A stretch of DNA of 64,000 bases, taken from positions 248,001 through 312,000 of the forward strand of contig MCFH01000016.1 in the NCBI GenBank assembly GCA_002104945.1, read 5' to 3'. The position numbers and the translations under genes are program-made. The notes under the pieces were generated by a model that worked only from the letters and a program-made list of their open reading frames with translations, was not told where the DNA came from and searched no databases. Source of the DNA: Piromyces finnis finn. Its lineage: Eukaryota; Fungi; Neocallimastigomycota. This document shows, one piece after another, positions 3,805-43,759 of the stretch (within the stretch, counting starts at the first letter, position 1; the number at the start of each line of letters is the position of its first letter).

Positions 3805-12745
<8,941 letters not shown>

Positions 12746-18848: not shown

Positions 18849-21226
18849 TTATTCATAATCTTTAACATTTTCATCATTATCATATTCTTCTAATGGCTTT
18901 TCTTTTGCAATTAAAGTTTTTTGATATTTTCTTTTTTGATATTCTTGATTAGCCTTTTATAAAACAACAACAATAATAATAATAATAATAATAATATGTA
19001 AATATTTAAATCTATTTTAATTTATACGGAAATATTAAATATTATTTATATTAAAAATTAAAATACCTCTCTTTGTGTGAAATAAAAATCAATTGCATCT
19101 TCATCCATGGCTGTGTTATTTGGGTTTTCTTTAATTGCATTTTGCATGATTGGAACACTTTTGGTTGCTTGTTTATTAATTGATTGACCATTATCTTGTG
19201 CATTTTGGGCTTCTGCCATTTTTTTGAAGAGTGAAACTTTACCCTTCTTTCTTGGCGTTGTTTCTCTATAATTATTATTTACATTATGTTCTTGAACTAC
19301 AGATTTAACACCAGCTAATATTTTGAAATAAAATGATATAAAATTCGATAGAATTATTTAATTTAATAAAATACATTAAATAAACATGTAAAGTAAAATA
19401 ACAAAATATTGATATTATATAAATGCTGTAGTTTTTTAATACCTGTAATTGTTTGTTCTTTAACTATATTTTTCATTACTGGCTTTGGATTTGATACAAC
19501 AATATCCTTTTTAATAGAAGATTGTTCAATGTTTTCTACAATATCTTGCTTTTTACGTTGTTCCATCATATGACTTTTAAATAGGGATGACTTTTTCTTT
19601 TTTGGTTGCTTAGGTTTTATATTAGCTATATAACTGTTTTCTTTTACCTTCTTTTCAACTACATTAGAAGTAAATGGTGATGAAGAAATTGGAGTCTCTT
19701 TAACAGTTTCTTTAACAGTATTGTTCTTTTGGGTATTTTCTGGTTCAACTATTTCATTATTTTTATCTTTTTGTTCTAATTCTGATTTATTTTTTTTTGC
19801 TTGTTCATTAATTTGATATATATGTTTGTAAATATCTGCTGGGTTTCTAATTTGTGACATATCTATGAAGTCCTTTTTATTATTATCATTATTTTCTTCT
19901 TTATTTATCTTTTTTATTTCTTTTTCTTTATATAAATTGAATTTTTCTTTTAATTGCTCAAAATTAACATCTTCATCTTCATCTTGTTCTTCGTCTTCTT
20001 CATCAGAATCCGCTTTCTTTTTACCTTTTTCATCTTCGCCATTATCTTCGTCGTATTCCTTTAATGATTTTATAAACTCTTCATATTCTTTTTCTTTATT
20101 CTTTTCATTTTCCATTTCTTCTTCTAATTCTGCTTGTTGTAACATTTTGAAAATTGCTTCATCTTCAGCACTAAGTTGCTTTTTCTTTTTTCCCTCATCT
20201 TTCATATCAATATGAATCTTTGAAGTTTTATCAGTTATTTCTTTAATAAAAAAAAATTAAATAAATAGAATTAAATTATAAATTATTATTGAATTTAATA
20301 ATACTAAAGTTATAAAATAAATTATTACCGTTGAGTTTTGCTTCTTCATCTTCATCATAATCTTCACGAATTTCAACATAATTCATACCTTCTTCATTTA
20401 ACTTTTGTTATACATATATATGAAATTAGAATTAATTATACATATAAAAAAAATAAATATAATAAAAGATAATAAATAGAAAATTATTATATTAAATTTA
20501 CTTCGTCATGTTTTATTGGTAAACTTTTTTCTGTTAATTTAACCTTTTGTTCTAATTCTTTTTTATCCTTTTTTAATTTATAAATATTTTCATTTACAAC
20601 TAATAATGTTATATTGATTAATTATATTTTCTTAAAATAAAAATTTATATTAATTAACTATTTTACATTTTAATCTTCTATCAACAATTTCACAAGATTG
20701 TTTTGCTGAACGTTCAACAAACCAATTATCACCAAGTAAAACAAGAATTTCATTAGTATGAATTAATTTTCCTGGGAAAAAGGCTAATTTACTGAATGGA
20801 ATCTTTTTTTAAATATTATTAATTTTTTATGTATTTATTGAGGAATAATTTATTTATGGCCATATATATAAGTCAATATATATATATATTGAAATTTTAG
20901 ATTTATATATATATTTTGTTTCATATTACCATAGCTTCATGTTGAATTTCGTTTGGTAAATCTTTTAATACTTTCTTTAAGTTAATATAATCATTCTTAT
21001 ATTCATCCCATTTTTTTATATTGGCATTAGTGTCTTTAATTGACTAGAAAATGAAATTGAGAAAAAAAAATAAAAATAAAATGAATTTTTTAATTTCAAT
21101 AAACTTTTTTTACTTTTTTTTTTTTCTAATTATTTTTATGACAATAAGAATATATCATTTTACTTTATTGAGTGCATTTTGATAAATTTCAATTTCTTTT
21201 GATGAAACAACTTTATTTATATCCAT
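18849..21226 (-). CDS. URI1: Unconventional prefoldin RPB5 interactor (URI1/Bud27)
   Basis: Alpha-prefoldin N-domain EAM|IPFSKLAFFPGKLIHTNEILVLLGDNWFVERSAKQ, acidic middle region, and C-terminal SSLFKSHM and KVSLFKKM motifs. Ends DFYFTQRE|ANQEYQKR...DYE*. Confidence 0.92.
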
Positions 21227-22122
21227 TATTAACTATATTCTTCTTTTTCCAAGTCTATATCAATGTATATATCTTAAAAAATTTAAAAAAAAAAAATTAT
21301 ATATATTTAAAAGTTTTTATTTAAAAATTATTATTTTATATTTGATTGGGTATTTTGGATATTTAACATTAAACATTTTATATTAATAAGAAAATTTGGA
21401 TTATACACATTAAAATTTTTAAAAATATAATTATTATAAATTTTTTTAAACCTGGAAAAAAAAAAAAAAAAAACAATTTATTATAAGTAACATTAAAAAG
21501 CAATAACAGTATAACAACAACAACAACAACAACATTTTATGTATATATTTCATAATTTATTTTCAGAAATAACTTTATTTACAAAACAACTTTATATTTA
21601 TTAATAAAAATACAATATAATGAAGAATATATAAAAATAGTTAATATATAAAAAGGTATATCTATAAAATATATAAATATAACACAATGAATTTTGAAAT
21701 CCAAATTTTAAAATTAATATAAATAGTATATAATATTTGGTTTAAATATTATTAAAAAATAAAATATACGGAGGAATAATAATATAATTATATAACAAAT
21801 GACATTTTCAAAAATAAAATAATAATATTAAAAGAATTAAATTTCTCATTATTAATTTCAAATTTCATAAATACAATATCAAATATAAAATATTTAAATT
21901 ATTATATAATACTTATAATATATATATATAAATATTTTATGTTTATTATTAATATTATTATTTTATAATATTAAATAATTATTCAAATACTTTTATTTCC
22001 TACTATTCTATTATTTCTGTCATTATTGTTATTATTTATTTATTTATATATTTATTTATTTAAAAATATATTTTGTTAATTTACATAAAGCATAAAGGAT
22101 AAAAGAATATATATAATAAATA

Positions 22123-22670
22123 ATGTCATTATTACAGGAAAATACCAATAATATAAATATACATGATTTAAGTTTACAAAATAACCAAAATAATCAAAAA
22201 TGGAATGAAAGACAAAAATTTTTTTCCTCAAATTCTTTTGTTCCAGTATCAGCACTCTCATTTGATGCCTATGAAGAATTATTATGGTGTGGAAGTGAAT
22301 TAGTAAATTTCATTTTAGTTATCTTTATTATGGAATAATATTATCAAAAGTTTTTTACATTTCAAATAATATATATAATAAATCAATAGAAAAAAGAGTA
22401 ATTGAAGCTAAAGTAATTAATTAATTAAATTAATAAAATTATTTATAAATAGGGAAGATTATCTTCATACTTTTATAATGAAGGACAATTTATGAATTAT
22501 ACTAGTTTTAAAAGTCATAATTCTCAAGTTAGACAAATATTGTCAACAGATGCAGGCGTTTTTTCGTTATCATCAGGAAATATCCGTTTAACAAGTAGAA
22601 GAGGATTACAAAAATGGGATTATACGTAATTTTATATTCTTATATAATAAATTAAAAAATATAAAGTATT

Positions 22671-22705
<35 letters not shown>

Positions 22706-24818
22706 ATATGAATGTTATTTATAATACTTTTAAATTTATTTTTGATTTTTTGATATATTCCCTACTATTTTTGTTAGACCTGAAACAATAAAAGATTTCT
22801 ATTGTATGTCTTTCACAGAAAATCCTTCAGAAATTGTAATAGGAGGGAGTATTGATTCTCTTTTAATAATGAATGTTAATAGAGGAGCTATCACTAATAA
22901 AGTAAGAATTTAATTTATTTAATTGAATAATGTAAAATTTTATATTAACCAATGGTATATTATTAAATTTATAATGTGTATAAAAATAAATTGCCGTATT
23001 GAATAGATTGATACCAATGATAATACTATAATTATGAAAAAAACAAAACAAATATTTTGTGCTTCATCATCAGGATATGTATATATGAGAGACCCTCGAT
23101 CATTTAAAGTAGAAAATAAAATTCAAGTACATAACGGCACCATAAGTGATATAGACATTAATAATAATATTTTAGCAACATGTGGATTTTCACAAAGGTA
23201 GTTTCTTAATTTATTATATATAAAAAAGTTATATACTATAAATAAAAATATAAATATATTACATTTAAAAAACAATTATCATATTAAAATAATATTATAA
23301 ATCAATATCAATAAAAATTCATGATAATGAATAAATAATTTACTAAAAAAAAAAAATAAAAGAGGAAATATGGCATTAGATCCAATGATTAAATTATTTG
23401 ATATAAGAACAATGAAAAGTCTTGATCCAATATCGTTAGAAAACGGACCATCTTTTTTAAAATTCCATCCTAAATATTCTTCTATGTTGACATCTATATC
23501 TCAATCAGGAGAATTAATTATCGTTAATATAAATCAACCATCAGAAATAGAGTATTATGATGTAATTAAAGAATTTTAATAAATATATATATATATATAT
23601 TTTATAAAAAAAAATCAAATCGATATTTTATTAATAATCATTTTTATTATAATTCAATAAATTAAATATATCTACTCAAAAATGGATAAATTATATAATA
23701 AACTAAAAAGATTCCAATCAATGGTTATTGCTCAGCATTTGATGTATCACCAACGGGTGAAGTCATTGCATTTGGTGATGCTTCTGGAATTATACATCAA
23801 TGGTCAGACAAAGAAAAAGCAATGATTACTTTCGATCCACATCAAACTGAAATTGTTAGTCCAATAAATCCACCACAAGTAATCATAGATGATAACTCGT
23901 AAATATTCAAAAAATATTAATAAAAATAATAATAATAATATATATATATATAATATTTTATCTTAAAATGATATTTATTCCTATTTTTCTTCGGACTTTA
24001 CCAACACATATAATTTATATGAACATGAATTGTATATAATAAATGTAAAAGTCCTTTATCATTAATAGGTATGCCATATTATAATGATCGTCTTTTATCA
24101 GCATGGCCATCCAATATGACTTTTTCTATTGGAAGACCACCACCAAAAATCCCAGAAGATATTTTAGCTAGTATGAAAAAAATTGATTTTATGGGATACT
24201 CTAAAAATGACAGTCAATACGTTCGTAATCAATCATATTTCTATACCAATCCGGAAATTGAGGACAACGAAGTACCAAAATTCCGTTCAGAACAAGAAAG
24301 AGAAAAAATATATAAAAAGTTTATTAAGAAAGAAGTAAATTCTTTTAATAAAATATTTTTTATCTATCTATATATCTATATATTAATAAACTAATATAAA
24401 AATAATATAAATATATAAATGAATCTTTATCCTTTTTAATATGAAAATATATAAAAATATAAAATTACTTTAAAATATTTTTATATTACAATATATATAT
24501 ACATAAACAGCCTGAAATTCATAAAGTTCATGATGAATCGATATCTATTGATGTTATACCACCAAGTTATTATAGAAAAGTTGAAATTAAATATAGTAGA
24601 TTTGGTGTGGAAGATTTTGATTTTGGGTAAAACACTAAATTAAAATATTATTCAATAAAATGCATAGTTATATAATTTATTATAGCTATTACAAAAATTT
24701 ATAAAAAAAATAACTTTTTTTTTAATTATTAAATATATAAAGATATATATTTATATATAAAATTTCAAATACCTTTTATTCTATTTATTCTAATTTTTTT
24801 TATTACAACTATTACAAC

Positions 24819-24912
<94 letters not shown>

Positions 24913-27672
24913 TAATAAAAAAACAGATTTTATAATAAAACTCAATATGCAGGTTTAGAAACAGATATTCAGAATTCATATTGTAATTCAATAATTCAAG
25001 TTATGTTTTTCAATGAACCTCTAAAAAATATTGTTAAATCTCATATCAAAACCAATTGTCTTAAAGAATTTTGTTTAAGTTGTGAACTTGGATTTATTGT
25101 ACGAATGTTAGAAGATGCTAAAGGATCAAATTGTCAAGCCTCTAACTTTTTACGAGCATTTGGAACAATACCTCAAGGTATGATATGATAAATTTAAAAT
25201 AAAAACTACGAAAAGATCCTATATATATAATAAAAATATAAGGATACGGCTATCATATTAATTATAAATTTTAATTCTAATACTGTAATTTATATATTTT
25301 TATAAATTAGCCTCTGCATTAGGTTTATTTGAACCTCAACCACCTTTAGTTTGTAGTTCATACGCAGCCTTAATTCAGAATTTCAATCGTTTCATTTATG
25401 AACAATTACATTTAGAATTAAATAAACAACACAATAAACTTTATGTTAAAAGTGATTATTATAAAAATAAGAATTTATCATATATTCAACAAGTCTTTGG
25501 TATAGAAATAGAATCTATTAGTCGTTGTCAATGTCTTTATGAAAATATTCGTCAAACTGTTATATATATTATTGATTTGGTGTATCCAAGAAATGTATGA
25601 GAAGAAAAAAAATAATAGCTTTTAAAATACAAAAATTTATGTTTTTTTTTTTTTTATTTTAAATATAACGTAACAAAATATATTAATCTTCTATTATAAT
25701 TTACATAACACTTTTTTTTTTTTTTTTCATTAGCAATCAAAATCTTCATTATCAATGAATTCATTAAAATTAAATGATACATCCTTTACTGAAGTTCTTC
25801 AAAGCAGTATACAGAAAGAAAATCAAACAAAGGCTTGGTGTAATAAATGTAGTAAATATCAACCAACAACTCAATTAAAGTATTTGAAATGTTTACCATA
25901 CGTATTAAATATTAATTGTTGTGTTACCAGTGAAAAGGAATTAATATATTGGAAAAAAGGTAGAAAAAATATTAATATTTTGCATAAAATTTATTTAAAT
26001 ATGATTATTTTAACCAATTTTTATATATAACAAAAAAATAATAATAATGCATACATACAATATATAGATAATATACATAATGCTTCATGGCTTCCACCAG
26101 TGTAAATATTAATTATATATATTATATTCTTTATAAAATAAATTTAAAAATAGACTATATTTTATTTAGAAATGGCTTTAAAAATTTTTTTAAAAATTCA
26201 ATTTATATATTTTATTCTTATAAAAATATTTATTTAACCTAATTTTTTTAGTATTGTCATTGAGTTGAAAAGTAAAGGATGTTTAGAAATTAGAGAATTT
26301 GATCCTATTAATGATAAAGATTTGGTTAATTCTAAGACTGTTGGTATCTATAAATTAAAGGTATTTATTAAAAAAAATAATAATATTAATAATAAATAAT
26401 AAATAATAAACAATAATAATAATAATAACAATTTATATTTGATATCCTTATTTTTTTATTATTATTATTATTAGGCTACTATTGTAGAAATTGCCCATGA
26501 TAAGGATTCTCTTCATTTAGTATCCCATATAAATGGTAAATATTTCCTAATAGCATTTTCTAACTTATATATAATTTTTAATTCACAACTAAATTTTTTA
26601 TTTCCTTTTTACTATAGTCAGTGAAAATAATCAAAAGGATGATTGGTATTTATTTAATGATTTCCTTGTTCAACAAATATCACAAGAAGAAGTATTATCA
26701 TATAGAAAATGGAAGGTTAGTAAAATAAAAAAAAAACTATAAATAGTTTTTAAAAAAATTAATATATAAAGTAGTATAATAATAATTATATATTTAATTT
26801 AATAATTATTTAAATAGATTCCATCTATTGTTCAATATGTTAGAACCAATTTAAATGAATTATTAGATTTATCTGTATTACCATCAACCACAGATACCTC
26901 AATTTTGGTTAAAGAATCATTCTTAAAGTTAGTTTAATCATAGAATTTAGTTTGAAATATATTAATATTCTAGATCATAAAATTCTATATTCATATTTAT
27001 TTTAAATAATTATGATGATGCTGATACCTTTTAATATATTTAATAGTCGTAGAAAAAATATTATTACTACATGTGAACCATTCACAGAAGATGAAATTCC
27101 AAAACAACCAGGTTATTTATGTGCCATTGATGCAGAATTTGTTGCTTTAAATAAGGTAATTCTAAAAAGGAAAAAAATAAAAAATAAATAAATTTATATA
27201 TTATATGAAAATCTGTAAACAAAAATGAAAAAAGAAAATATTTTTCTACTAGTTTTTTCTTTTTTCTTTTTTTTTTTTACTTATTACATTTTAATGACTT
27301 TATTTTTTTAAAAAAAAAAAAAACATTTTTGTAGGAAGAAACCGAAATTCGTAGTGATGGTACAAAATCTTTAATTAGACCACCAAGAATGGGATTAGCT
27401 AGAGTTAGTGTATTAAGAGGTTCTGGACCCAAAGAGATTACACCATTTATTGATGATTATATTTCATCAAGTGAAATGATTGTAGATTACCTTACTGAAT
27501 ATTCTGGTATTAAAGGTAAAATATATATATATATATATATATATGATTAATACATTAATTGAAGTATATATAATAAAAAATAAATAAACTTTATTTTTTT
27601 TAATTAATAGCCGGTGATTTAGATCCAGCTTTATCTAGACACATGTTAGTTCCATTAAAGGTAGATAAATAA

Positions 27673-27705
<33 letters not shown>

Positions 27706-28443
27706 TTATAAAAATAATAATTAATATTAAAATAATTTTTGCTATTAATAATATTATTTCCTATAAGGCATCCTATAAAAAATTACGTCTTTTAGTAGAT
27801 AAAGGTTGTATATTTATTGGTCATGGTTTAGCAAATGATTTCCGTATTATTAGTAAATATCAGAAAATAATAAATTATAAAATAAACTAAAAAAAAAAAA
27901 TTATTAATCATTTTATTTAATTTTTTTTTTTTTTCCATTCTATAAAATATAAAAGATATTTATGTCCCACCAGAACAAATCATTGATACAGTACAAATCT
28001 TCTTTATTAAGAATCGTCAACGTAAAATCTCTCTACGTTTCTTGGCATGGTATTTATTAAAAGAAGATATTCAAGTTGAAACTCATGATAGTATTGAAGA
28101 TGCCAGAACGGTAATTATTTTTCTTAATTTTAATAATATTATATAAATATATATAAATTAATTAGAAAAAAAAAATGGATATAAATAAATATTAATATAT
28201 AATATATGTATATGTATATATATGTATATAGGCACTCCTTATTTATAAAGAATATTTGAAATTAAAGAAAGAAGGTAGATTTGAAGAAGTTTTAGAAGAT
28301 ATTTATAAAGAAGGTAAATAAAAAATGCAATATAATAATTATTCTTTTCACAGCGCCTACATTATCCCTAACATTTTTATTATATTATATAAAAATAATA
28401 ATAATAATTAGGAGCATCCTTAAATTGGAACATCCCAAAATAA
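22123..28443 (+). CDS. PAN2: PAN2-PAN3 deadenylase catalytic subunit (WD40 + pseudo-UCH + DEDD exonuclease)
   Basis: [29 protein letters not shown]|[87 protein letters not shown] and [10 protein letters not shown], across roughly 25 exons. Stop at 28441-28443. Confidence 0.97.
24819..24912 (+). repeat. (TTA)n microsatellite in a PAN2 intron
   Basis: About 30 uninterrupted TTA units. Confidence 0.95.
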
Positions 28444-31430: not shown

Positions 31431-33093
31431 TTAGGATTCATATTGATTTTGCATAGAAGCCGTCAATGGTACACCCATATCTGTTTCAATATAACTATGA
31501 TATTTACTAATATTTTGATCTCTGCTAATTTTTCTTCTTTCTTGTTCACGTGCAACCCTCTTTTTCTTTTCATGATCTTGGTAGAAACAATAACAAATAA
31601 ATCCTATTAATAAAGTACAAACTAAGATAATAATACCCACAATATGTTGAACTTCGAATTTTTCACTGTCCGAAACGATAAATCTTCTAATATTAATAAC
31701 AATACCAACAACTAATACAATAATCCAAAGAATTGGAATCATTTTTTGATTCCATTTGGATATCTTCTTTAAACGAGAAGATGTACCCCATCCATTATCC
31801 CAAAGGAAAAGTAAAGCTTGAATTTTTGCTGGTATAAAACCAATCAAGTAAACCACTCCATAAAACATATTAAATAAAAATTTTAATTTTTTCGTATAAA
31901 CTAAAGCATAGAAAGTTCTCAAAGCACCCATAATGAAAAGCGTTAATACCCATGTGATCATTTGCCATAAAGTACCCTTATAGATAAGAACGAGAAGAGA
32001 ATAAATTAAAATAAATGGATAAATAATATGGAAAATAATTTCGTAGGTCATCCATAAACTTTGAACAGGTGTAGCCTTGACAGCAAAGAGAGCTTCACGA
32101 TAAAACGATTTACTCCATCGAGTTTGTTGTGTAACCCATCTAATAAATGTTTCTGGAGTTTCCGTATAACAAAAAGCATATGGAGTATATTTCACGTATC
32201 TTCCAAGTGCTAAAGTTAAATTAGTTCTATTCATATCGTATCATTTATATTATTAAAAATGAAAAATAAAAAAAAAAAAGATATATATTTTCATTTTTAT
32301 TAATTTTATAAAATATGGGGTATTTTATAAAAAAAAAAAAAAAAGAATAAATATAAATTAGTATTCTATAAAAATTTATATTAAAAAAATTTTGTGTTTT
32401 ATTAAATTAGAAAAATAATATTATTGTATATTTAAAAAAATATTAAATACAAAATATATAATAATTATATATATACATTTTAAAAATATAAAATATAAAT
32501 ATATATATATAATATGTATATATATAAACTTACAAATGACGATCATCCCCATAAGTACAAAGAGATCCTAAAAATCTTTGCCTAATCCATTTATCAATAA
32601 TTTCTCTCAATACATCACTACGATAAATACCTAAAGGACCAGACACACAAGTAACACAATTTTGGAAAGATTGTGCAGAACGTTCCATATTGAAAGCAAA
32701 CCAATAACGAAGAGAAGATAAGAAAGAAAGCATAGTACCAGTATTCCAAATTCTAACATCACCAGTAGCTGCACCTACAAAATTATCATCCAACATAAAG
32801 GCTAATTCTTTAATACAATGAGTATCCAAAATGGTATCTGAATCGGTAACGACAACAGCTTCTACTTGACATTGTAATAAAACTTGGAAACCAGTATACA
32901 TAGCTGCTCTTTTACCAAAGTGTGCTATGATGATTTAAAAAAATAGAGAATATATATATATATTATATTATTTATATATTATGAATTATGATATATAAAT
33001 TATTTTAATATGTTAAAAAATATATAATAATAATAATAAGAATAAGAATAAGAATAATAAGAATAAGAATAAGAATAATAAGAATAAGAATAA

Positions 33094-33182
<89 letters not shown>

Positions 33183-33285
33183 GTAATAGTAAAATTATTA
33201 ATATTCTATTAAATATTAAAACTATATAAATATAAATATAATTTTACTAAAATTTTCAAATTTTTTTTAATTTTATTAGTAATAA

Positions 33286-33344
<59 letters not shown>

Positions 33345-34568
33345 GACTTTATATCTACGTACGTTGCATAATACAAACAGGACCCATACATTTTTTAACT
33401 TCTTCCACTAACTTAATTGCTCTTTGTTCAAACATTTCAATATCTTGAAGTCTAAAATCAGTGGTAATAACACGATGATCCCATTTTGAAAAAACTTTAG
33501 AAAAGATATCACCCATATAACGATCCTCTTCATCATTACCATCAACAACAACAATAATTCTTTCATTTTTAGCATATCTTAAATAAGTAATGGATTTAAG
33601 ACACCCTCTAAATAATTCTGGATCTTCTCTATACCCTACAACTAATAAACCAGTAGAAAGACCAGTCCAATCCTTAAGTCTTCTATTCTTTTTTTTAGTA
33701 ACTTTACGATAATTAAGATAGGCAAACAAGGCTTGTACAAAATAATGGATTACAATAACCAAACCATAAAAACCTAAAGTCCATAATGTTGTTCTAACAA
33801 TTGCTTGTCCGATAATATAACCTGATAAATTTTTTTATTTTTTTTTTTTTTTGTTAGTATACTTTAAAATTCTAATAATTTAATTATTAGAAATAATATA
33901 AGAATGAAAATATAATAAAATATATTTAAATATAAAACTTCTAATTGATTAAAAAAAATTTTTTTTATAATACTATTATTATATATAAAAATATTTCAAT
34001 TTTGGTTTATTATTATTTCTATTATCCTATTTTTAAATCCTTGATTAGATATATTCATAAAATATTTTATCTACTTGTATTTTATTTCAAAAAAAAAAAA
34101 ATTAATATTTTAAAATTTACCAACAATAACTGGTGTAATTAATAATAATGAAGCCGCAAAAGTCCATATTAAAACAATTTTTCTTTGTGTTTTTTCTTTT
34201 GGTGTTTGTGGATCCGCTAATGGTACTCTAGGAGCATTATATCTATTAGGATATTCACCTACGTTTTGAGTAGAATAGGTATAGTTGGTACTATTTTGAA
34301 GATTTTGATTAAATGAATTGTATTTACTGTAAGTTTTATCATCAGGATAGGTGTTATTATCAATTGAAATGGTATTCATGGGAATATCATTTGCTCCATT
34401 AATTTTATTGGCATTAGAAATATCACCATCTCCACCATTATAATTATAATCGGGGTATTCATTTAGTGATTGCTTACTTGACGGTGGTGGTATATAGTCT
34501 GATGGTGGATTATTATATATACTTGGTCTATAATATTGACTACTTTCTGTATTAGTATACTTGGACAT
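31431..34568 (-). CDS. Class I hyaluronan-synthase-like processive GT2 membrane glycosyltransferase (697 aa)
   Basis: Exons 34568-34121, 33821-33363, 32924-32534 and 32226-31431 total 2094 nt and the phases match. Motifs: GYREDP, VVVDGN, CIMQPHFGKRAAMYTGF, VTDSDT, GDVRIWN, LSSLRYWFAFNMERSAQS, CVTCVSGPLGIYR, CTYGDDRHLTN, TETP, QQTRWSKSFYRE, WGTSSR. Two N-terminal TMs and about five C-terminal TM/interface helices. Confidence 0.92.
33025..33341 (+). repeat. Compound (AATAAG)n-(AAT)n array plus A50 tract in intron 2 of the HAS-like gene
   Basis: Array at 33025-33190 and homopolymer A at 33292-33341, read directly. Confidence 0.9.
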
Positions 34569-35690
34569 GATTTCTAACTTTTTTTTATTTTAACTCCCAA
34601 TTTTTATAATATAACCTTTTTTTATATATATACTTTTTTTTTTTTTTTGTTTTAGTTTTTTATTTCACTTTTTTTTATTTTTTTTTTCAATTTATTTTTA
34701 ACTTTATTATAAATGATAATTTATTAAATACTTTATCATTTATAATAATGTTTTTTTTTCTACTTGAATAATAATTCTATTAAGTATAAATTAATTATAG
34801 GTATTAAAAAAGTAAAAAAAAAAAATTGAAAAATGAGTAAAATAAAATAAAATAAAATGTTAAATGATATTCAATAATGACATTACCAAGTAATTTTAAT
34901 TATTAAAATAAATCTATTATTCTTATAATAATTAATTAATTTCATATGTATTTCCTACATACATTTTAAAGTAAAATAATTATGAAAATAGACTTTAATC
35001 AAATTAAAATTCCTTTTAATTAAAAAAAAATAATAATAATAATTAATTATTTATTATATTGAAAAAATAAAAATAAAAATAAGCAGTATAATTTTTTTTA
35101 CAGATTTTCCAATTTTCTGCTTATTAAGAAGGCATTGACTTTAATTAAAAAAAAAAACTTTTTTTTTAATATAATTATTTAAACTTTAATTAATTTAATA
35201 TATATTTTTTATAAAAAGATAAAATAAAAAAAAATTATAAAAAAAAGGTAATGTTGTTTAAAACAAATAATAAAATTTTATTTCTTCATATTACCATTAT
35301 ATAAAAAAAAAAAAAAAAGAAATCCCTTTTTTTTTTATATATATACAATATATTCAAATTTGTTACAGGTGTAATGTCAACTAAAAAAGTTCAAAAAAAT
35401 TAATTAAAAAAAGTTTATTCTATTAAAAATATTTCTACAGAATCCTACATAAATAAATTAATTCTTTAAAAGAATGAAAAAAAATGTTACATTAAAAGAA
35501 GAAAAAAAAAGTTTAAATATAATATTTTAAAGTAAATAATTATTAAAATTACTTTAAACTATTATATTTAAACCATTGTAATTACAATTTAATATGTAGT
35601 AGCAAATATATATAATCTTTATTATTTAAATTTTAAAATTTAAATTAATAAAAACTATCATTTATCCATAATAATTCTTAAAGGCTTTCC

Positions 35691-35856
35691 GTAAGTTTTT
35701 TTTTCTTAATTTGAATTCTATTTTTTTTTTTTTTTTTGATAATATATAACTTTGAAGAAATTATACAAATGTAAGTTGTTTTTTTTTTTTCTTAATTTGA
35801 ATTCTATTTTTTTTTTTTTTTAATAATAAATAACTTTGAAGAAATTATACAAATGT
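35691..35856 (+). repeat. Imperfect ~80-bp tandem duplication
   Basis: Two units GTAAGTT-polyT-CTTAATTTGAATTCTA-polyT-..TAACTTTGAAGAAATTATACAAATGTA, starting at 35691 and 35771. Confidence 0.9.
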
Positions 35857-38789
35857 ACTGGTGAAACTGTACAATATAATTGGTAAAACAAAAAAGTATT
35901 ATTTTTTTTGTTTGTGTTTGGTTGGGTTTTTTTAATATTAATACAATTCTTTATCCTTTTGTTGTTATTATTTATTCATTGTGCTATAAATATTGTTTTT
36001 ATATACAGTTTAAGTCTGCCTACCTTTTCTATCATTAGGATAATAATATAGTTAAAAATTATATGGTTTTTTTATTAATTTAAATAAAAAATGGTTATCC
36101 TTTTTATAATAAATGTTTTTTATCCCTAAAAATTAATGAATAATGTATTTTATTATACATTAATTTTATTATCAAAAACAAACTCCGATATGCTAAAAAA
36201 AATTTAATAAAAAATTTAAACTTTTACCCTTTTACATAATGTATACACTATCTATCTTCACCTACATTTTTTAAAATTGAAAGATAATGTTACAGCTATT
36301 TTTAGATGAAGATAAGATGCAATGACAATTTTTTAAAGTTTATAAACATTTGGTTATGAAAACTTTTTAAATACGATAAAATTTAGATAACATGCAAGAT
36401 TTGATCAAACATTTGATATATCATTAAATAGCAATATTACTATTAATAATAATAATAATACTCCATTACTACCATTATACTACTAATTATTAGTATTAAT
36501 ATTATTAATATTAGTAGTAGTAGTAGTAGTAGTAATTGTTGTTGTTGTTGTTGTAGTGGTAGTAATAAAAAGAATTGTTTAAATCATATAATTATCATAT
36601 TATAGTAATTCCTTTTTTTTTTTTTTCATATTGAATAATCTTATAATAGTGGAAAATAAAAAAAAAATAAAAAGCATTACCAATAATGATGATAAATGTG
36701 ACTATTTTAATTAATAATAAAAAATTATGTCTTTGGTCTAAGACATTGACCTATAATTTCATTGGTATTTTTATTTTTTTTAAAAGTAAATTTCCTAACC
36801 ACAAATCTTTTCATCTTCCACCTACCCATGTAGCCTACAGAATTATCAAATAATTTTTTTTAAAAGATAATTTTTTTTAATATAAAAATTTATCACAAAA
36901 ACTTTTAGATGGTTTTTTATTGGTTCATTGAATTTGATAATTAAATTGAATGAAATTGATAAATTTGTTTAATTTATTAAAATAAAAATTAAAATTTAAA
37001 CTTTAAAAAGTTAAAATTATGAAATATAAAAAAAAGAGGATATTGAAAAAAGGTTGAAAATAAGAAAAAAAAAAAAAAACTAATTTGAATAGGCATTTCT
37101 TTTTTTTTTTTTATTATTATCACCATTAACTATCATCATTTCTTTAATCATTTTTATTCATTTAAAAAATAATTATAGTGTAATTTTAAATTTTAAAAAG
37201 ATTAAATTTTAAAAAGGACAGGATAATTTATAATGTTTTTATATAATAGTTTAAATCGTTTATTAAAGGGTGTAAAAGTTAATAATGTAAAAGTTAATAA
37301 TTATATTATTAACTTTTACTATTTTATTTCAGTTGACATCGCTAGAATAATAGATGGAAATTTTATTATTTATTACTTTATTTGTTTTCTCCTTTGATGG
37401 TTTGTAAAAACTAAAGTTTTAAAATTTTATATTAGTATAAAAAAAAAAGTTTATAGTTTGCTATCTAGGTCGTGAATACTTAATAGAGTTTTAAATTTCT
37501 TGGGATGATTTTAGAGTTTAATAAATATGAAAAAAAAATATTTTAAATTTAAATATTATTAAATTATTCCTTTGGAAAAAAAAAAAAGTTCATTTAAAAC
37601 TTTATCAATGGATTAAAAAAAGAAGATGAATAGGAATTGACCTTTGTAACAAAGTCTTGATCCAATTATTTTTTTTATAATAATATTATGTATCTATAAT
37701 TATAATTGAAATCAAATGGTTGTGTGTAATCCTGCCTGTTTTTTTTCTTTTTTTTTATAAATCAATGTTAATATAAATAAATTAAATAATTATTAATTCT
37801 AATTATAAATACAAATATAAACAAATACTTGATCATTATAATATTATATTTTATATTATTTTATATACCTTATCACTATTTTATTTTGATGTTTTTTTTT
37901 TTTTTTTTAAAAAAAAGAAATGTTTTACTTATCTATTAGTATAAAAAACTACCGATAAAACGATCAATTGATTACATATTATTTAAATGGTTATTATAAA
38001 AATTTGAATTATTAGTTGATTTAATTTGAAAAGTAAAGTAGTTTTATGACCTTACAGCCTACTACAGTCTACTACTACTACTACTATTACAACACAAATT
38101 ACAACCTTTTATTAAAATTTTTTAATATATAATAAATTTTAATAATTATTTTCAGTTTTCAATGTCATTCATGCTATTTATTGTTAGTATGGATCAATTT
38201 TACTAAATTTTTAATATTAAAAATGATATCTCTTTGGCTTTATTTTCTTTTTTCATATCTCTCTAATTATAACTTTATCGAGAATAATCATTCTTTTTTT
38301 TTTTAAAGTCTTCCTTATTATTTTTTTTTTTAATTTGACTTTTTTTAAAAAAAAAATATTTTAAATTGACATTTTTTAATATATTAAAATACACTTTATT
38401 ATATTTAGAAATATTTATATAATATATATAATATTAATTAAAAAATTTAAAATATTTAAATTAAAAATATATTAAATATAAAGTTTAAAAATATAAAAGT
38501 TTAAATTTATTTTTATATAAAATAAAGTTTGATAAAAATTATCTTAAAAGATAAAAAATAAAAAAAATCCATGAAGAATAAGAAGGAATAAGGGAATAAA
38601 AGTGGTATTTTAAAAAGGTTTTTTTTTAACCTTTTAAATAAAATATTTAATGCAGTAAAAAAAAAGATATTTCAATGTAATACGATTAAAATATTCTAAT
38701 GGATCGTTTGTTAAAAATATATTTTTTATTATATATCTTTATCATCATCCTTTCTTTATCTTTCTATCATTTTAAAAGTTTAATTTGTT

Positions 38790-38826
<37 letters not shown>

Positions 38827-41251
38827 AATGGCTATCTTTTTATTTAGTGTGAGTTTATTTTTTTATTTAATAACTAATCTTTTTTTTTTTATAGAAAAAA
38901 ACTAGTAATTTATTTTTTATGAAATATTGGTTGATATTAATATTTATAATTTATCTTTTTTTTTTAATATTTCCAATATTGTGTATTCCTCAATAATAAC
39001 TAATAAAAGAACATTTAATGTAGATAAATTCATCTATATTGTAAACATAAATAAAATAATCTTTTTATAGATATTATTATTAATCTTTTATGTTTTTTTT
39101 TTTTTTTTTTTAAATTCATTATTATTGATCCTAAAATTGAATAAAAAAAAAAAAGATAGCAATTAAACTTAATATTATTTTCTTTATTAATATTATTTAA
39201 TATTATTCTTATTTATTATTTGTTTTATTCTTATTTATTTTATTAATAACTATTTTTTTTTTATATATTTTTTATGGTTAAAAAGGTTTTATTATTTAAT
39301 ATATTTTATTTTTATTAAATTTATTTTTTTTATAATAAAATAAAATTTATAAAAATTTTATTTTTTTTTATCTCAAAAAAAAAAAAGCTTTTAAAAAAAA
39401 CTAATCATTTATATCATTTGTTGTTTTTTTTTACTAGATAATTTAAATGTTTTTAATACAATAAAACCTTTGAGTAAAATTTAATAAAATACTCAAAAAA
39501 ATAAAGTAAAAAAAAAAAAAATAACAAATATTTAAAAAGTATTTTTTTTTAAAAAAAAAATAAATGTAAATTTCCTTATTATATAATTATAATATTTTTT
39601 TTTATATTTCAAATTTAAAGTATATATAATATATATATGGGAATAATAGTTAAAATAACGGTTAGAAGGATATTCAATAACAATAAATAAATAAATACAA
39701 TATATATAAAAACAGAAAGTAAAATATAATAATTATTATATTAAAATGACATTTTGAGTAAATTATCGGTAGAAAAAAAAAAAAAAAAATCAATGAGAAC
39801 ATTTTGGATTACAAAATAAAGACAACAATAAAGTGAAAAATTATTATTAAATATTAAAAAGCAATATTAAATAATTGTTGAGTATTAAAAAAAAAAGTGA
39901 TAAAAGCAAAACAACATATTATATTAAATCTTTCTTTAATCTGTTAATAATTTTAAAACAATTAATTTTAATTCACCTTATTGAAAAGAGACAATTTTAT
40001 AACAATTAATTTTCATTCACCTTAATTTAAAAAAAGAGAAATTATTATTTATATTTATATTACTATTTTTTTTCACATATAAAAAAAACAAAACTTAAAG
40101 GATTCTTTTTAGAAAATAAAAAATTTTATAAACCCAAAAATACTATTCAATAATATATTCAATAGTTTACTTTTTAATAATTATATATTGAAGCACACAA
40201 TAGACTACCCTTTTAAATAAAAACCCATCAACACCCACTGTTATTTTTATAAAAATAAATATCTAGTTCAATTGTAATTCAATTTTGTTAAATTGGCTTC
40301 ATGGTAGTGGACCTATAAAATCACAGCTATAACTAATAAAAAAAAAATTTTTTTTTTGTGCAAGGTTAAAAAATTGATATTCCAGTATTTAATAAATCAA
40401 ATATATTAAATTTTTATTATACCAAAAAAAGAAAGTAACAACAATAACAAAAAAATAAAAAATTTTTAAAGTCACACCTTTTATAAAAAAAAAAAAGCTG
40501 GAATTTTTTACCTTTTTCTTTTTTTTTCAAATAAATACATTTATACTTGTATTATTTATTGCTTTCTTTAAATACCTAATGTTTATCTAATATATTTTAT
40601 TAATTTTTTTTTATATAATAATTATATATATAAAAAAATAAAATATTTTAATTGTGTCATTAATATTTTTTTTTTTTTTATTTATATATTCTTTTTTATT
40701 CTTTCTATTGGATATATAATTACTTCCCTTTTGAATATTAAAAATAATATTCATCATTAAACAATAATAATAATATGTCTACCATTATTTATTCACATTC
40801 CTACCCTCCTTCAAAAATATCAATATCACCCTCAGATTCATTGTTATTTCCAGAAATTTTTGAAAAGTATAGGTTTCTCAGAGTCAATAAAAATAATATT
40901 TCAAAAAAAAAAAAAAAAAAAGAACAAATTTTATAAAAATAATCATTATAAAAGTATTAATAATAGTAACAACAATAAAATAAAATATCAATATTTAGTA
41001 ATATTAAATCTACCGATTTTAGTACACCCATTACTACACCTGTTGTTGTCGTTCACTGTACTAATGAAAAAAATTGTTTAAATTCTCAATACAGTGAACT
41101 TACTTCTCCAATTAATATAAATACCAAAAATACTATTAATTATCTTAATTCATATCAATCACACGATACAAAATTTTCACCCGTTAAAACAAATCCTTTA
41201 TTTTTAAAAAATAGCTGTTTTTTTATATACTCAACTTTAGATAATCCATCC

Positions 41252-43759
41252 ATGGAAGATTATAGACCTTCTTCAGAATTTAATACAGTAAAAACCAAAG
41301 AAACGGAAAATGGAATGCTTTCTTTATTCCCATTAAATAAACAAGGAGAAACCATTAAGACAGATAATTTTGACGATGTGTCCATTCAAAATGTGATGAA
41401 TAATACTTCATCAATGAAGAAAAATGACAATAAAATTCATAATATGAATCCTATTAATAATTTATCAGAACTTAACAAAATGGAAGATATTCATTTAATC
41501 AATTCAATAGATCAACATAAAATTAATCATGATCATCATCACTATATGGAAAATCCTTTTTATTATGAAACCACCAATATGACTGCATTAGATTCTGAAA
41601 TTAAACCATCCTACAGTTATTATTATGGTAAATTTTCAAATATAGATATATATTTACCTATAGAATAGAAAGTCTTTTTTTTTAATTTAATCATAGAATA
41701 GAGTAATAAAGAGGAATATCTTTAACATTTTTATATAAATAATAGAAAACGTGAAATAATGAATATATATATCATTATTATAATAAAATAATTAATATTT
41801 TTTTTTTTACCCCAAAAATTTAAATATTTTATCATTTTTTTTTTAAAAAAAAGGTAATAATCAACCAAATTTAAATTGTCAAATGGATAATCATCAAAAT
41901 AGTAATGTTAACAATTCTAGTAATATATTAATGAAAACTTCTCAATATACCCCACAATCAATTCCAATTCCAACTAATAATGTATCAACAAATTACTCAT
42001 CTTTTGATGGTATTGATAATATTGAAAAAACTTTAGAAGAAGTCAAGGAATTAATAGAAAAAAGTAAAGCATTATCATTAGGTGAAATCATATCACCAAG
42101 TAATCATAGTTCTGAATTAAATGAAAAAATGATAAATCAGTTAGAAGATCGAGCCTATACTCCATCAGATATCATAAATGAAACAGAAACCCCAAATGAT
42201 ACAGTAGGACAACCAATGATGTTAATACAAAATGAAACCGATACTAAAGAAGGTAAAAAAAAAAAAAGCGAGAATAATATTTATTTGAAAATAAAATAAC
42301 TATTAAATATTATTATGAATGAAATAATGAAATAAGGAAAAAAAATTTTTTTTTTTTGATTTTAAAGCGTGAGAAAAAAATTATTAACTAAATTTTTTTT
42401 TTTGAATTTATGATAATATTAATTTATATTAAACTATTAGCATTAAATAATGAAAATGGAAATAATAATACTTTTGTCAAGACGACTACTCTTTTAACAG
42501 AAACAATTACTACTACTACCACCACCACTATGGTAAAACAATTAACTAAAATCGAAATCGAAGATAATAGTGTTATCAATGAAAAAAAAGAAGTAAAAGA
42601 ACAAACTTTTACAGATAAAGAAACTAAAGTTGAAGTTATCAATACTAATGAATATGAAAAATCACCAAAAACTGAAGAAACCACAGAAAAAAAAGAAGAC
42701 ATTGTTAAGATGTATGAAGAAGATAAAAAAGAAGAAGATGAAAATGAAACATTATTTTCTTCACCAGATAGAGCTAATGATTCTGGTTTTGTTTCAGATG
42801 ATTCAACTAGTTATTATAGTAGTCGTTCCTCATCTCCTAGTCGTAGAAGAAGAAAATCTTCTTTAAAATCACCAAACTTCCCAGGTCGTCGTAAATCAGT
42901 TCAATTTAGTAATGATTTGGAAATGGTATGTTTATTTGAATGTTTAGATGCCCCAGAAGATATTGGTGAAAGTCCACATTTTGTAGTACCGGATTCTAAA
43001 GAAACAGTGATAGAAGAAAATCAAAAGAAGGAGGAAGCCCCAGAAGAAATCGTATATAAAAATGGTATTTGTTTAATTAATATTCCAGTATTTACTCCAT
43101 TTGATATGATGAGTAATATTATGGGTTTAGAAAGTATTGAACTCGTTGATGGTAGTATATTAAAAGGTACTATTCAAGTCAAAAATCTTGCTTATCATAA
43201 AAGTGTTGTTATTCGTTACACTCTTGATAACTGGAATACTACCAAGGAGGCACCAGCAGTTTATACTAGTGCTGTTACTAATGGCACTGCTTTTTATAGT
43301 GATGTTGGCCTTGATTTATTTACCTTTACCATTGATATGACCTCACAATTTAACGCTTTTAATAATTCATTGGTACCACACTTTGCTGATCACCCAATTG
43401 TGATGTCATTTGCTATTAAATATGAAGTCAATCATACTACCCATTGGGATAATAATAATTCTAATAACTTCCAAATAGAATTTGTTCAAATTCCAGAAAA
43501 TGAACCTGCTGTTACTCGTAAAAAGTGTTACCGTTCTCCAGGATATGAAGCCTTATTAGAAATGTCTAAAAAGACAACCAATAGTAAAATCGGGGATGAT
43601 GAATATACCTACTCTTCCAATAGTAAATAACAATAACACAAATTTTATTTTATTTAAATTACATTCTATAATAATATATAATTACCATTACCAATAATCA
43701 TCACTTTTATTAATTTTCATTTTAACATTATTATAAACATCATTTTTATTAATCCTAAA

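Follow-up and report, generated by a model that had tools for sequence, protein, structure and literature searches.

A class I-NR hyaluronan synthase-like gene in the gut fungus Piromyces finnis and its pairing with UDP-glucose 6-dehydrogenase in two other gut-fungal lineages

In a 64,000-nucleotide stretch of the genome of the gut fungus Piromyces finnis (Neocallimastigomycota; contig MCFH01000016.1, forward-strand positions 248,001 to 312,000), which we call the window, a minus-strand gene at 31431–34568 encodes a protein that, judged by its sequence and by the modeled fold of a close orthologue, is a member of the class I-NR hyaluronan synthase (HAS) family, the vertebrate and chlorovirus type, a single-subunit, membrane-embedded, processive glycosyltransferase family 2 (GT2) synthase. 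The gene is intact, spliced and under strong purifying selection, and it is transcribed in the close orthologue. Its likeliest product would be hyaluronan or a near-identical polymer in which N-acetylglucosamine (GlcNAc) alternates with glucuronic acid (GlcA), placed at the surface or in the wall matrix; we put this reading at about even probability, because the GlcNAc acceptor collar, the pair of residues that would recognize the GlcA carboxylate and the electropositive channel residues are intact and because related genes are paired with a gene for uridine diphosphate (UDP)-glucose 6-dehydrogenase (UGDH). What is new here is this pairing, a HAS-like gene head-to-head with UGDH in two other gut-fungal lineages.

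The gene structure was obtained from a listing of open reading frames (ORFs) and from inspection of splice sites between 31000 and 35000, and is laid out below in the order of transcription.

31431–34568, minus strand: HAS-like gene, four exons and three GT...AG introns.
34121–34568, minus strand: exon 1, amino acids (aa) 1–149 and the first base of codon 150 by the splice model and hydropathy; start codon, an N/Y/P-rich disordered cytosolic N-terminus (aa 1–127) and transmembrane (TM) helix 1 (aa 131–149).
33822–34120, minus strand: intron 1, 299 nt, GTAAAT...ATCAG, phase 1, 9.7% G+C.
33363–33821, minus strand: exon 2, TM helix 2 and the first half of the GT-A domain, with GYREDP at 33619–33636, VDGN at 33535–33546 and the beginning of CIMQPHFGKR, which the exon 2/3 junction divides after CIMQ.
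32925–33362, minus strand: intron 2, 438 nt, GTACGT...CATAG, 7.1% G+C.
32534–32924, minus strand: exon 3, the catalytic core, with GKR (Lys307), the DSD metal-binding motif at 32833–32844, SSLRYWFAFNMER at 32680–32718 carrying two interface-helix arginines, CVTCVSGPLG at 32620–32658, and GDDRH with the predicted catalytic base Asp430.
32227–32533, minus strand: intron 3, 307 nt, GTAAGT...AATAG, 7.8% G+C.
31431–32226, minus strand: exon 4, QQTRW at 32115–32129 (interface helix), the membrane channel helices, the gating loop WGTSSR at 31773–31790, two extra C-terminal TM helices at 31689–31745 and 31587–31643, a basic tail and the stop codon TAA (31431–31433, included).

The four exons join in phase to a coding sequence of 2094 nt and 697 aa with no internal stops. 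Exons contain 30–34% G+C and introns 7–10%, around a window mean of about 19%. The initial annotation, made from the letters alone, had proposed four exons spliced in phase to a 697-aa protein and had suggested that transcripts be used to check the junctions. Contig L004, assembled in Logan from run SRR12917177, carries the orthologue from Anaeromyces robustus as one uninterrupted ORF and spans exon 1; aligned to the A. robustus genome it falls into four 100%-identical blocks whose ends coincide exactly with the three junctions in the window. Therefore, the A. robustus orthologue is transcribed and spliced as modeled. Comparison of the window coding sequence with that transcript gave a ratio of nonsynonymous to synonymous substitution (dN/dS) of 0.08 at dS = 0.74, indicating strong constraint and a species different from A. 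robustus.

Intron size and content varied among the gut fungi. The orthologue on a metagenome contig from a third gut-fungal lineage (L001) has its three introns at positions identical to those in the window, and they are much shorter there. In the window, about 150 nt of intron 2 (33030–33180) are taken up by an (AATAAG)n/(AAT)n microsatellite, and about 55 nt (33283–33341) by an unbroken A/T homopolymer run. Intron 3, of 307 nt in the window, measures only about 88 nt in L001 (5990–6075) and is missing from Piromyces sp. E2, whose exon 3 runs straight into exon 4 (L005, 10965/10966), so that the locus shows intron loss or change of size among gut-fungal genera.

To place the protein we searched with the separate exon pieces, used exon 4 for the exhaustive search, and used full-length orthologues elsewhere. 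With phmmer against the solved structures in the PDB, exon 3 matched Xenopus HAS1 at E = 2.7e-37 and chlorovirus HAS at 4.6e-37, while exons 4 and 2 matched Xenopus HAS1 at 5e-30 and 1e-18; no chitin synthase was found among the PDB matches of the exon pieces, even at E<1. Among 1.84 billion cluster representatives exon 4 matched 426 proteins at E<=1e-3. The best 150 of these 426 look HAS-like, nearly all having at least one of GDDRHL, DSDT, QQTRW and WGTSxR, and there was no chitin synthase among those 150. The nearest named relatives were fungal, chordate and chloroviral; HasA and CPS1 themselves were not aligned to the window protein. The compact class I-R type, about 420 aa without a C-terminal TM pair, was not matched by the 697-aa window protein, which has two extra TM helices at its C-terminus.

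All of the processive-GT2 and HAS-type motifs listed in the initial annotation were found in the protein: GYREDP (212–217), VDGN (242–245), CIMQPHFGKR (299–308), DSDT (330–333), CVTCVSGPLGIYR (392–404), GDDRHLT (428–434), QQTRW (466–470) and WGTSSR (579–584), together with RYWFAFNMER. A published motif table gives the HAS set as (A/P/V)(G/A/S)Y(R/Q/N)E, DG, KRxxM, DSDT, xSxxY, GPL, xGDDRHL, QQxRW and xWGT(S/R) (Goncalves 2016 Fig. S3), and the window protein has the HAS form at nine of nine: VGYRE, DG(N), KRAAM, DSDT, SSLRY, GPL, YGDDRHL, QQTRW and GWGTS. It matches no chitin-synthase row of that figure, those for recCHS/class VI and CV/ESV included, and a regular-expression search of the window protein for Q..EY, Q.RRW and [ST]WGT[RK] found none. 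The statement that the chitin-synthase motifs EDR and QRRRW are lacking needs amendment; QRRRW is indeed absent, but the tripeptide EDR occurs at 248–250 (within DEEDRY), away from the catalytic-base motif GDDRHL.

These motifs bear directly on the possibility that the enzyme is a GlcNAc-only chitin or chito-oligosaccharide synthase, an unusual fungal class that merely resembles HAS. Fungi make much chitin, and early-diverging fungi hold many unclassified synthases (PMC5353729); a Fusarium oxysporum relative (P0383) is deposited as 'chitin synthase'; some chytrid relatives carry a fused GH16 domain, and a GH16 gene adjoins that of the Fusarium relative; HAS primes itself with GlcNAc (PMC12987647); and the vertebrate HAS DG42 has in the past been credited with chitin oligomers made in vitro, as cited in PMC7053769. 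The Pfam family Chitin_synth_2 also gives hits, precomputed ones on the full-length orthologue being 'weak', and our own on the exon 3 piece scoring 24.1 bits against a cut-off of 27, with nothing on the other pieces, a conservative result in that only pieces were searched; the remaining Pfam matches of the pieces were generic GT2 matches, uninformative for HAS versus chitin synthase. Against this, QxFEY, (A/G)EDRxL, QRRRW and SWGT[KR] are all absent from the window protein, the recCHS/class VI motifs (LGEDRWL, QRRRW, TWGGP) differ, and the position of the glutamate of QxFEY would be held by Arg375, the counterpart of the GlcA-contacting R287 of Xenopus HAS1. HAS 'xSxxY' and chitin-synthase 'QxFEY' share motif slot d, so that Arg375 would occupy the place of the chitin-synthase Glu, and the exchange, read from the motif table and not from a structural alignment, would be a charge reversal suiting an acidic chain. 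UGDH adjacency in two gut-fungal lineages likewise has no rationale for an enzyme that uses only GlcNAc. We consider a chitin-like product unlikely. Assignment to the recCHS/class VI class, or to the CV/ESV class ('Chs8', clustered with UDP-GlcNAc 6-dehydrogenase, UNGD), was rejected, since the motifs differ and the Fusarium relative has neither a UNGD nor a deacetylase neighbor.

The predicted fold pointed the same way. An AlphaFold2 model of the A. robustus orthologue, which is 89% identical to the window protein, was made from a 55-sequence family alignment and had a mean predicted local distance difference test (pLDDT) score of 78.7, above 90 in the core and below 50 over aa 1–127, consistent with a disordered N-terminus. 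With Foldseek it aligned to Xenopus HAS1 with a TM-score of 0.91 and a root-mean-square deviation of 2.5 Å, and to chlorovirus HAS with TM-scores of 0.84–0.88; after a sharp drop came the chitin and cellulose synthases at 0.28–0.44 (E>=5e-13), the chitin synthases of yeast, Candida and Phytophthora lying at 0.28–0.39. The fold is thus far nearer HAS than any solved chitin synthase. Hydropathy and the model also placed two TM helices at the N-terminal side of the membrane core and, at its C-terminal side, the extra pair (about aa 594–612 and 628–646) that the initial annotation had reported. We concluded from the exon searches, the motif table and the fold that its description of the gene as class I HAS-like, of vertebrate and chlorovirus type and not a chitin synthase, was sound.

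Structures of two proven enzymes allowed the functional residues to be compared one by one, the PBCV-1 positions being mapped after correction of a +7 numbering offset in the retrieved sequence. In chlorovirus HAS, as seen by electron cryo-microscopy, the uracil is enclosed by Y91, H174 and K177 and the metal is held by D201 and D203, with a second metal site at E93; the GlcA carboxylate, in a proofreading pose, is sandwiched between K177 and R341, and the priming loop is shaped by Y299, G300–D302 and R348 (PMC12987647). In Xenopus HAS1 the GlcNAc acceptor collar consists of Y288, F292, C307, W382, S385, D342 and R343; R287 and R296 of interface helix 1 adjoin GlcA-2, and K448 lies mid-channel (PMC11750622). 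All of these positions are conserved in the window protein, K448 as Arg536. The counterparts are Y213, E215, H304, K307, D330, D332, Y427, G428–R431 and Q466–W470, and further S473, R476, R375, Y376, F380, R384 and C395; for the carboxylate and channel set, chlorovirus K177 and R341 correspond to K307 and R469, and Xenopus R287, R296 and K448 to R375, R384 and R536. The same residues are near-invariant across the fungal clade.

Such residues would serve other acidic chains as well. A HAS chassis with altered sugar choice or linkage could make a different GlcA polymer, a beta-1,4-polyglucuronan or a GlcA heteropolymer, for which the mucoric acid, mucoran and GlcA-rich exopolysaccharide of zygomycetes provide models. 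Polyuronides are abundant in Mucorales walls and exopolysaccharides, and a membrane-bound, Mn2+-dependent UDP-GlcUA transferase activity described there is still without a gene (PMC6433966); a family member occurs in all Mucorales examined; UGDH adjacency and the conserved carboxylate and channel arginines suit any acidic polymer equally; and the acceptor specificity of chlorovirus HAS is relaxed in vitro (PMC12987647). However, the whole Xenopus HAS1 collar is conserved, which argues that GlcNAc remains one of the two sugars, and the literature searched held no report of polyuronide in gut fungi. We judge a GlcA polymer other than hyaluronan improbable for this gene.

If the enzyme uses UDP-GlcA, a source of that sugar is needed, and the initial annotation had suggested that UGDH be sought. 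Neocallimastigomycota are predicted to be UGD-positive and able to make UDP-GlcA (PMC8092308). Blastocladiomycota have no UGD. In two gut-fungal lineages we found a dehydrogenase of eukaryote type and the synthase as divergent neighbors.

L001, 1293–3558, minus strand: UGDH, metagenome contig of a third gut-fungal lineage.
L001, 4361–6804, plus strand: HAS-like gene, head-to-head with the preceding.
L005, 5172–7429, minus strand: UGDH, Piromyces sp. E2.
L005, about 9500–11698, plus strand: HAS-like gene, head-to-head with the preceding.

The two genes share an intergenic region, of 0.8 kb in L001 and of roughly 2 kb in L005. The L001 dehydrogenase is a multi-exon gene, and its pieces matched human and Caenorhabditis elegans UDP-glucose 6-dehydrogenase best among PDB entries (E = 2.5e-22 and 8e-10), so that a UDP-GlcNAc 6-dehydrogenase, which we had considered, was rejected. 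The HAS-like proteins of L001 and Piromyces are only about 73% identical, and each is 69–71% identical to that of Anaeromyces; therefore, the pairing has persisted in distinct lineages of gut fungi. It is confined to some of them. The arrangement suggests a co-regulated two-gene unit in two gut-fungal lineages that was lost or rearranged in Anaeromyces, and the adjacency is a first hint, at the level of gene context, that fungal HAS-type enzymes use UDP-GlcA.

Relatives of the window protein are widespread in fungi. The closest, A. robustus BCR32DRAFT_230492 (P0162), is 89% identical over its full length. Beyond the gut fungi, members of the family occur in Chytridiomycota (Geranomyces, Terramyces, Boothiomyces, Polychytrium and Chytriomyces), Gonapodya, dozens of Mortierellomycota, Endogone, Basidiobolus, Umbelopsis, Bifiguratus and essentially all Mucorales sampled, and patchily in Dikarya; non-fungal members comprise chordate HAS (amphioxus HAS2, mole HAS3), an annelid protein, PBCV-1 HAS and many unnamed environmental sequences. 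In a maximum-likelihood tree of 82 rows (LG+C20+F+G4; unrooted, with no chitin-synthase, NodC or HasA outgroup), the window gene grouped with those of A. robustus and Piromyces sp. E2 (100/100) inside an all-fungal clade of 19 rows (98/98) shared with chytrids, Gonapodya, Endogone, Basidiobolus and Mortierellomycota. A second fungal clade (99/96) held Mucoromycotina, Basidiobolus and Dikarya; PBCV-1 HAS clustered with environmental sequences and GH16-fused chytrid proteins (95/94), and chordate HAS formed a clade of its own (100/99). From its position inside an all-fungal clade, the gene was inherited vertically within fungi and not acquired by gut fungi from a host or virus, a safe conclusion, as is the view that its branch stands on a level with the two HAS branches proven by experiment.

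This placement, with the structure of the locus, decides against a recent horizontal acquisition from an animal host, a giant virus or a bacterium, or contamination, in the service of host mimicry. Neocallimastigomycota are known for many horizontal transfers. HAS, moreover, was long thought to be limited to chordates, a chlorovirus and a few bacteria (PMC10939387). However, the gene has three spliceosomal introns, of which at least introns 1 and 2 are common to the other gut-fungal genera examined; its exons and introns have the composition of the host genome; the locus is syntenic with that of A. robustus, lying between a CBM21 gene and PAN2; the order within the all-fungal clade roughly follows fungal phylogeny; and the chordate and chlorovirus clades are separate. 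We regard acquisition or contamination as effectively refuted. The initial annotation was therefore right that the gene is genuinely fungal and no contaminant; as to its suggestion of a host-mimicking glycan, a gut-specific or host-mimicry origin is unlikely in view of orthologues spread, by vertical descent, across chytrids, Gonapodya, Mortierellomycota, Endogone and Basidiobolus.

We propose the following mechanism for a hyaluronan-like product. The disordered cytosolic N-terminus would be followed by two TM helices leading into a cytosolic GT-A domain, which would bind the UDP-sugar and a divalent metal through D330 and D332, with Y213, H304 and K307 around the nucleotide. Asp430 of GDDR would be the catalytic base, and Trp470 of QQTRW would hold the acceptor at the mouth of a channel built from the enzyme's own helices. 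One active site would take UDP-GlcNAc and UDP-GlcA alternately, K307 and R469 acting as counterparts of the chlorovirus carboxylate-recognizing pair; the chain would grow at its non-reducing end and be extruded to the cell surface through an electropositive channel lined by R375, R384 and R536. In at least two gut-fungal lineages expression may be co-regulated with UGDH.

Several results weigh against hyaluronan as the product. The literature search found no biochemical assay of any fungal member of the vertebrate/chlorovirus-type family, and no primary report on hyaluronan or HAS in gut fungi, chytrids or Mucorales. The UGDH check came out divided, since the partner present in two other lineages has no counterpart in the 64-kb window, where tblastn with three L001 UGDH exon peptides gave nothing below E = 0.2; nor was the pairing found at the A. 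robustus, Polychytrium, Geranomyces, Terramyces, Linnemannia, Mucor or Fusarium loci. The HAS-specific residues are also kept in the environmental and Dikarya clades and cannot separate hyaluronan from another acidic polymer, the GH16 fusions and neighbor would also suit a wall polymer cross-linked like chitin or glucan, and the DG42 report shows a vertebrate HAS credited with chitin oligomers. In the phylogeny, of the kind suggested by the initial annotation, the window gene lay apart from the chordate and chlorovirus clades, and the backbone joining these to the fungal clades was not resolved in an unrooted tree lacking chitin synthases, NodC and HasA.

A bolder proposal, which we offer tentatively and think possible though short of probable, is that early-diverging fungi, those of the gut among them, produce true hyaluronan by means of a class I-NR synthase that descends vertically from an ancestor early in the fungi or the opisthokonts. 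If so, hyaluronan synthesis would be an old opisthokont trait and not one that chordates invented and of which microbes hold scattered copies; an unrecognized acidic matrix glycan would be present on the zoospores, cysts or hyphae of fungi; and in gut fungi one divergent promoter would serve both UGDH and the synthase and co-regulate them.

Hyaluronan is usually regarded as a chordate matrix polymer. An expert review gives class I-NR only from vertebrates and PBCV-1 (PMC10939387), and chitin-synthase surveys have used HAS as an outgroup only and have purged their datasets of GT2 proteins other than chitin synthases, naming HAS as an example. Records of the gene and its family already exist, GenBank and UniProt having automatically named family proteins 'hyaluronan synthase' and the nearest clusters 'Hyaluronan synthase 3' or 'nucleotide-diphospho-sugar transferase', so this is not a new kind of system. 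The gene matters as one of a large, conserved and expressed fungal branch of class I-NR type with the residues for UDP-GlcA and hyaluronan contact intact, and it is of value as a pointer to a pan-fungal branch whose product existing HAS assays could test directly. Should the product be hyaluronan or a sister GlcA polymer, the origin of HAS would move back and the chlorovirus gene would gain context, the long-known but gene-less polyuronide synthase activity of zygomycete walls would have a candidate gene, and an unsuspected surface glycan would exist in gut fungi, chytrids (relatives of the amphibian pathogens included) and Mucorales. Should it be chitin-like, the family would be a natural experiment on what determines sugar specificity in HAS-type enzymes.

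Several observations on relatives stand apart from these arguments. Three chytrid HAS-like proteins of about 950 aa (P0031, P0333 and P0335, from Physocladia and Rhizoclosmatium) are fused to a GH16 domain (PF00722), and in Fusarium oxysporum a GH16 gene (L009, 7270–8238) lies directly upstream of the HAS relative (L009, 10001–12127), which hints at processing or cross-linking of the polymer within the wall in these branches. In Linnemannia elongata a nucleotide-sugar transporter gene of the TPT/UAA/EamA families (L010, 6636–8121, plus strand) is directly upstream of the HAS-like gene (L010, 10001–12256). A complete 590-aa HAS-like transcript (P0014/P0155; EukProt, transcriptome shotgun assembly prefixes GILK/GILJ) falls at the base of the all-fungal clade (93/83), and if its source were a non-fungal holomycotan the family would be older. 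HAS-family proteins outside vertebrates also include those of the annelid Owenia fusiformis (P0034) and of Branchiostoma (HAS2, P0035); with the fungal clades, they bear on the view of HAS as a chordate or vertebrate innovation. Several GenBank models from Mortierellomycota and Mucorales (among them P0187, P0230, P0236, P0240, P0244 and P0208) are much longer than their relatives and bear names such as 'ATP-dependent RNA helicase', 'mannitol-1-/sugar-/sorbitol-6-phosphatase' and 'endonuclease V-domain protein'; these are probably gene-model fusions with neighbors.

The window also contains other genes, at the following positions.

7650–9347, minus strand: gene.
9658–11337, minus strand: gene.
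20041–28320, minus strand: gene.
42410–43630, plus strand: gene.
53442–55772, minus strand: gene.

The other genes of the window are eukaryotic and encode an intron-split SNF2-family helicase, a DUF7607 protein, a PAN2-type protein and two proteins with CBM21, a glycogen/starch-binding module. Gene order in the window is collinear with that on A. robustus scaffold MCFG01000053; upstream of the synthase lies a CBM21 gene and downstream the PAN2-type gene, which was identified through collinearity with the A. robustus locus (L003). Between 34569 and 41300, upstream of the synthase, the ORF listing showed AT-rich non-coding DNA only, and the roughly 6.7 kb at 34569–41250 held no ORF of note.

Among known systems, the only fungal protein with published evidence for hyaluronan synthesis is the candidate HAS CPS1 of Cryptococcus neoformans, which has been placed with streptococcal HAS and pneumococcal Cps3S (about 26% identity) as an ally of class I-R (PMC10939387). 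It belongs to a different subfamily, one with reducing-end growth, set apart from the window protein by published description and not by alignment, and no Cryptococcus protein was among the matches listed for the HAS-like gene. Chitin synthases (recCHS division 3/class VI, such as A. fumigatus ChsD, and CV/ESV, such as F. graminearum Chs8) are processive GT2 enzymes like the window protein and have in common with it the D, DxD, (E/D)DR, QxxRW and WG motifs and a channel of their own making. All classes, recCHS included, have QxFEY-type, (G/A)EDRxL and QRRRW motifs (Goncalves 2016 Fig. S3), whereas the window protein has SSLRY, GDDRHL and QQTRW at those sites. CV/ESV genes are clustered with a nucleotide-sugar 6-dehydrogenase; theirs is a UDP-GlcNAc dehydrogenase (UNGD), whereas the gut-fungal neighbor is a UDP-glucose dehydrogenase.

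The direct orthologues lie in other gut fungi. A. robustus BCR32DRAFT_230492 shares its three introns and its neighbors with the window gene; it is automatically named 'Hyaluronan synthase' in UniProt, which shows that public annotation already includes the gene. The Piromyces sp. E2 'glycosyltransferase family 2 protein' is 71% identical; its model is truncated at the N-terminus, and its gene, without intron 3, is the one head-to-head with UGDH. PBCV-1 HAS (A98R; class I-NR; PDB 7SP6 and others) is about 31–32% identical to the window protein and identical at Y91, E93, H174, K177, D201/D203, Y299, R341, W342 and R348. It differs in its gating loop (WGTRG in the virus, WGTSSR here) and in its clade, shared with environmental and GH16-fused chytrid proteins. 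The chlorovirus also encodes enzymes for UDP-GlcA supply, an arrangement that the gut-fungal UGDH pairing recalls. Xenopus laevis HAS1 (PDB 8SMM, 8SMN and 8SMP), representing vertebrate HAS1–3 of class I-NR, is about 33–35% identical over about 545 structurally aligned residues, and more so in the catalytic-core exon. Unlike vertebrate HAS, the window protein falls in an all-fungal clade, has a 127-aa disordered N-terminal extension, places His, as does the viral enzyme, where vertebrates have Trp in the uracil pocket, has Tyr and not Phe before GDD, and replaces the mid-channel Lys448 with Arg. It nevertheless has in common with Xenopus HAS1 the nine signature motifs, the acceptor collar, equivalents of R287 and R296, a WGTS-type gating loop (WGTSSR here, WGTSGRK in Xenopus) and the two C-terminal TM helices.

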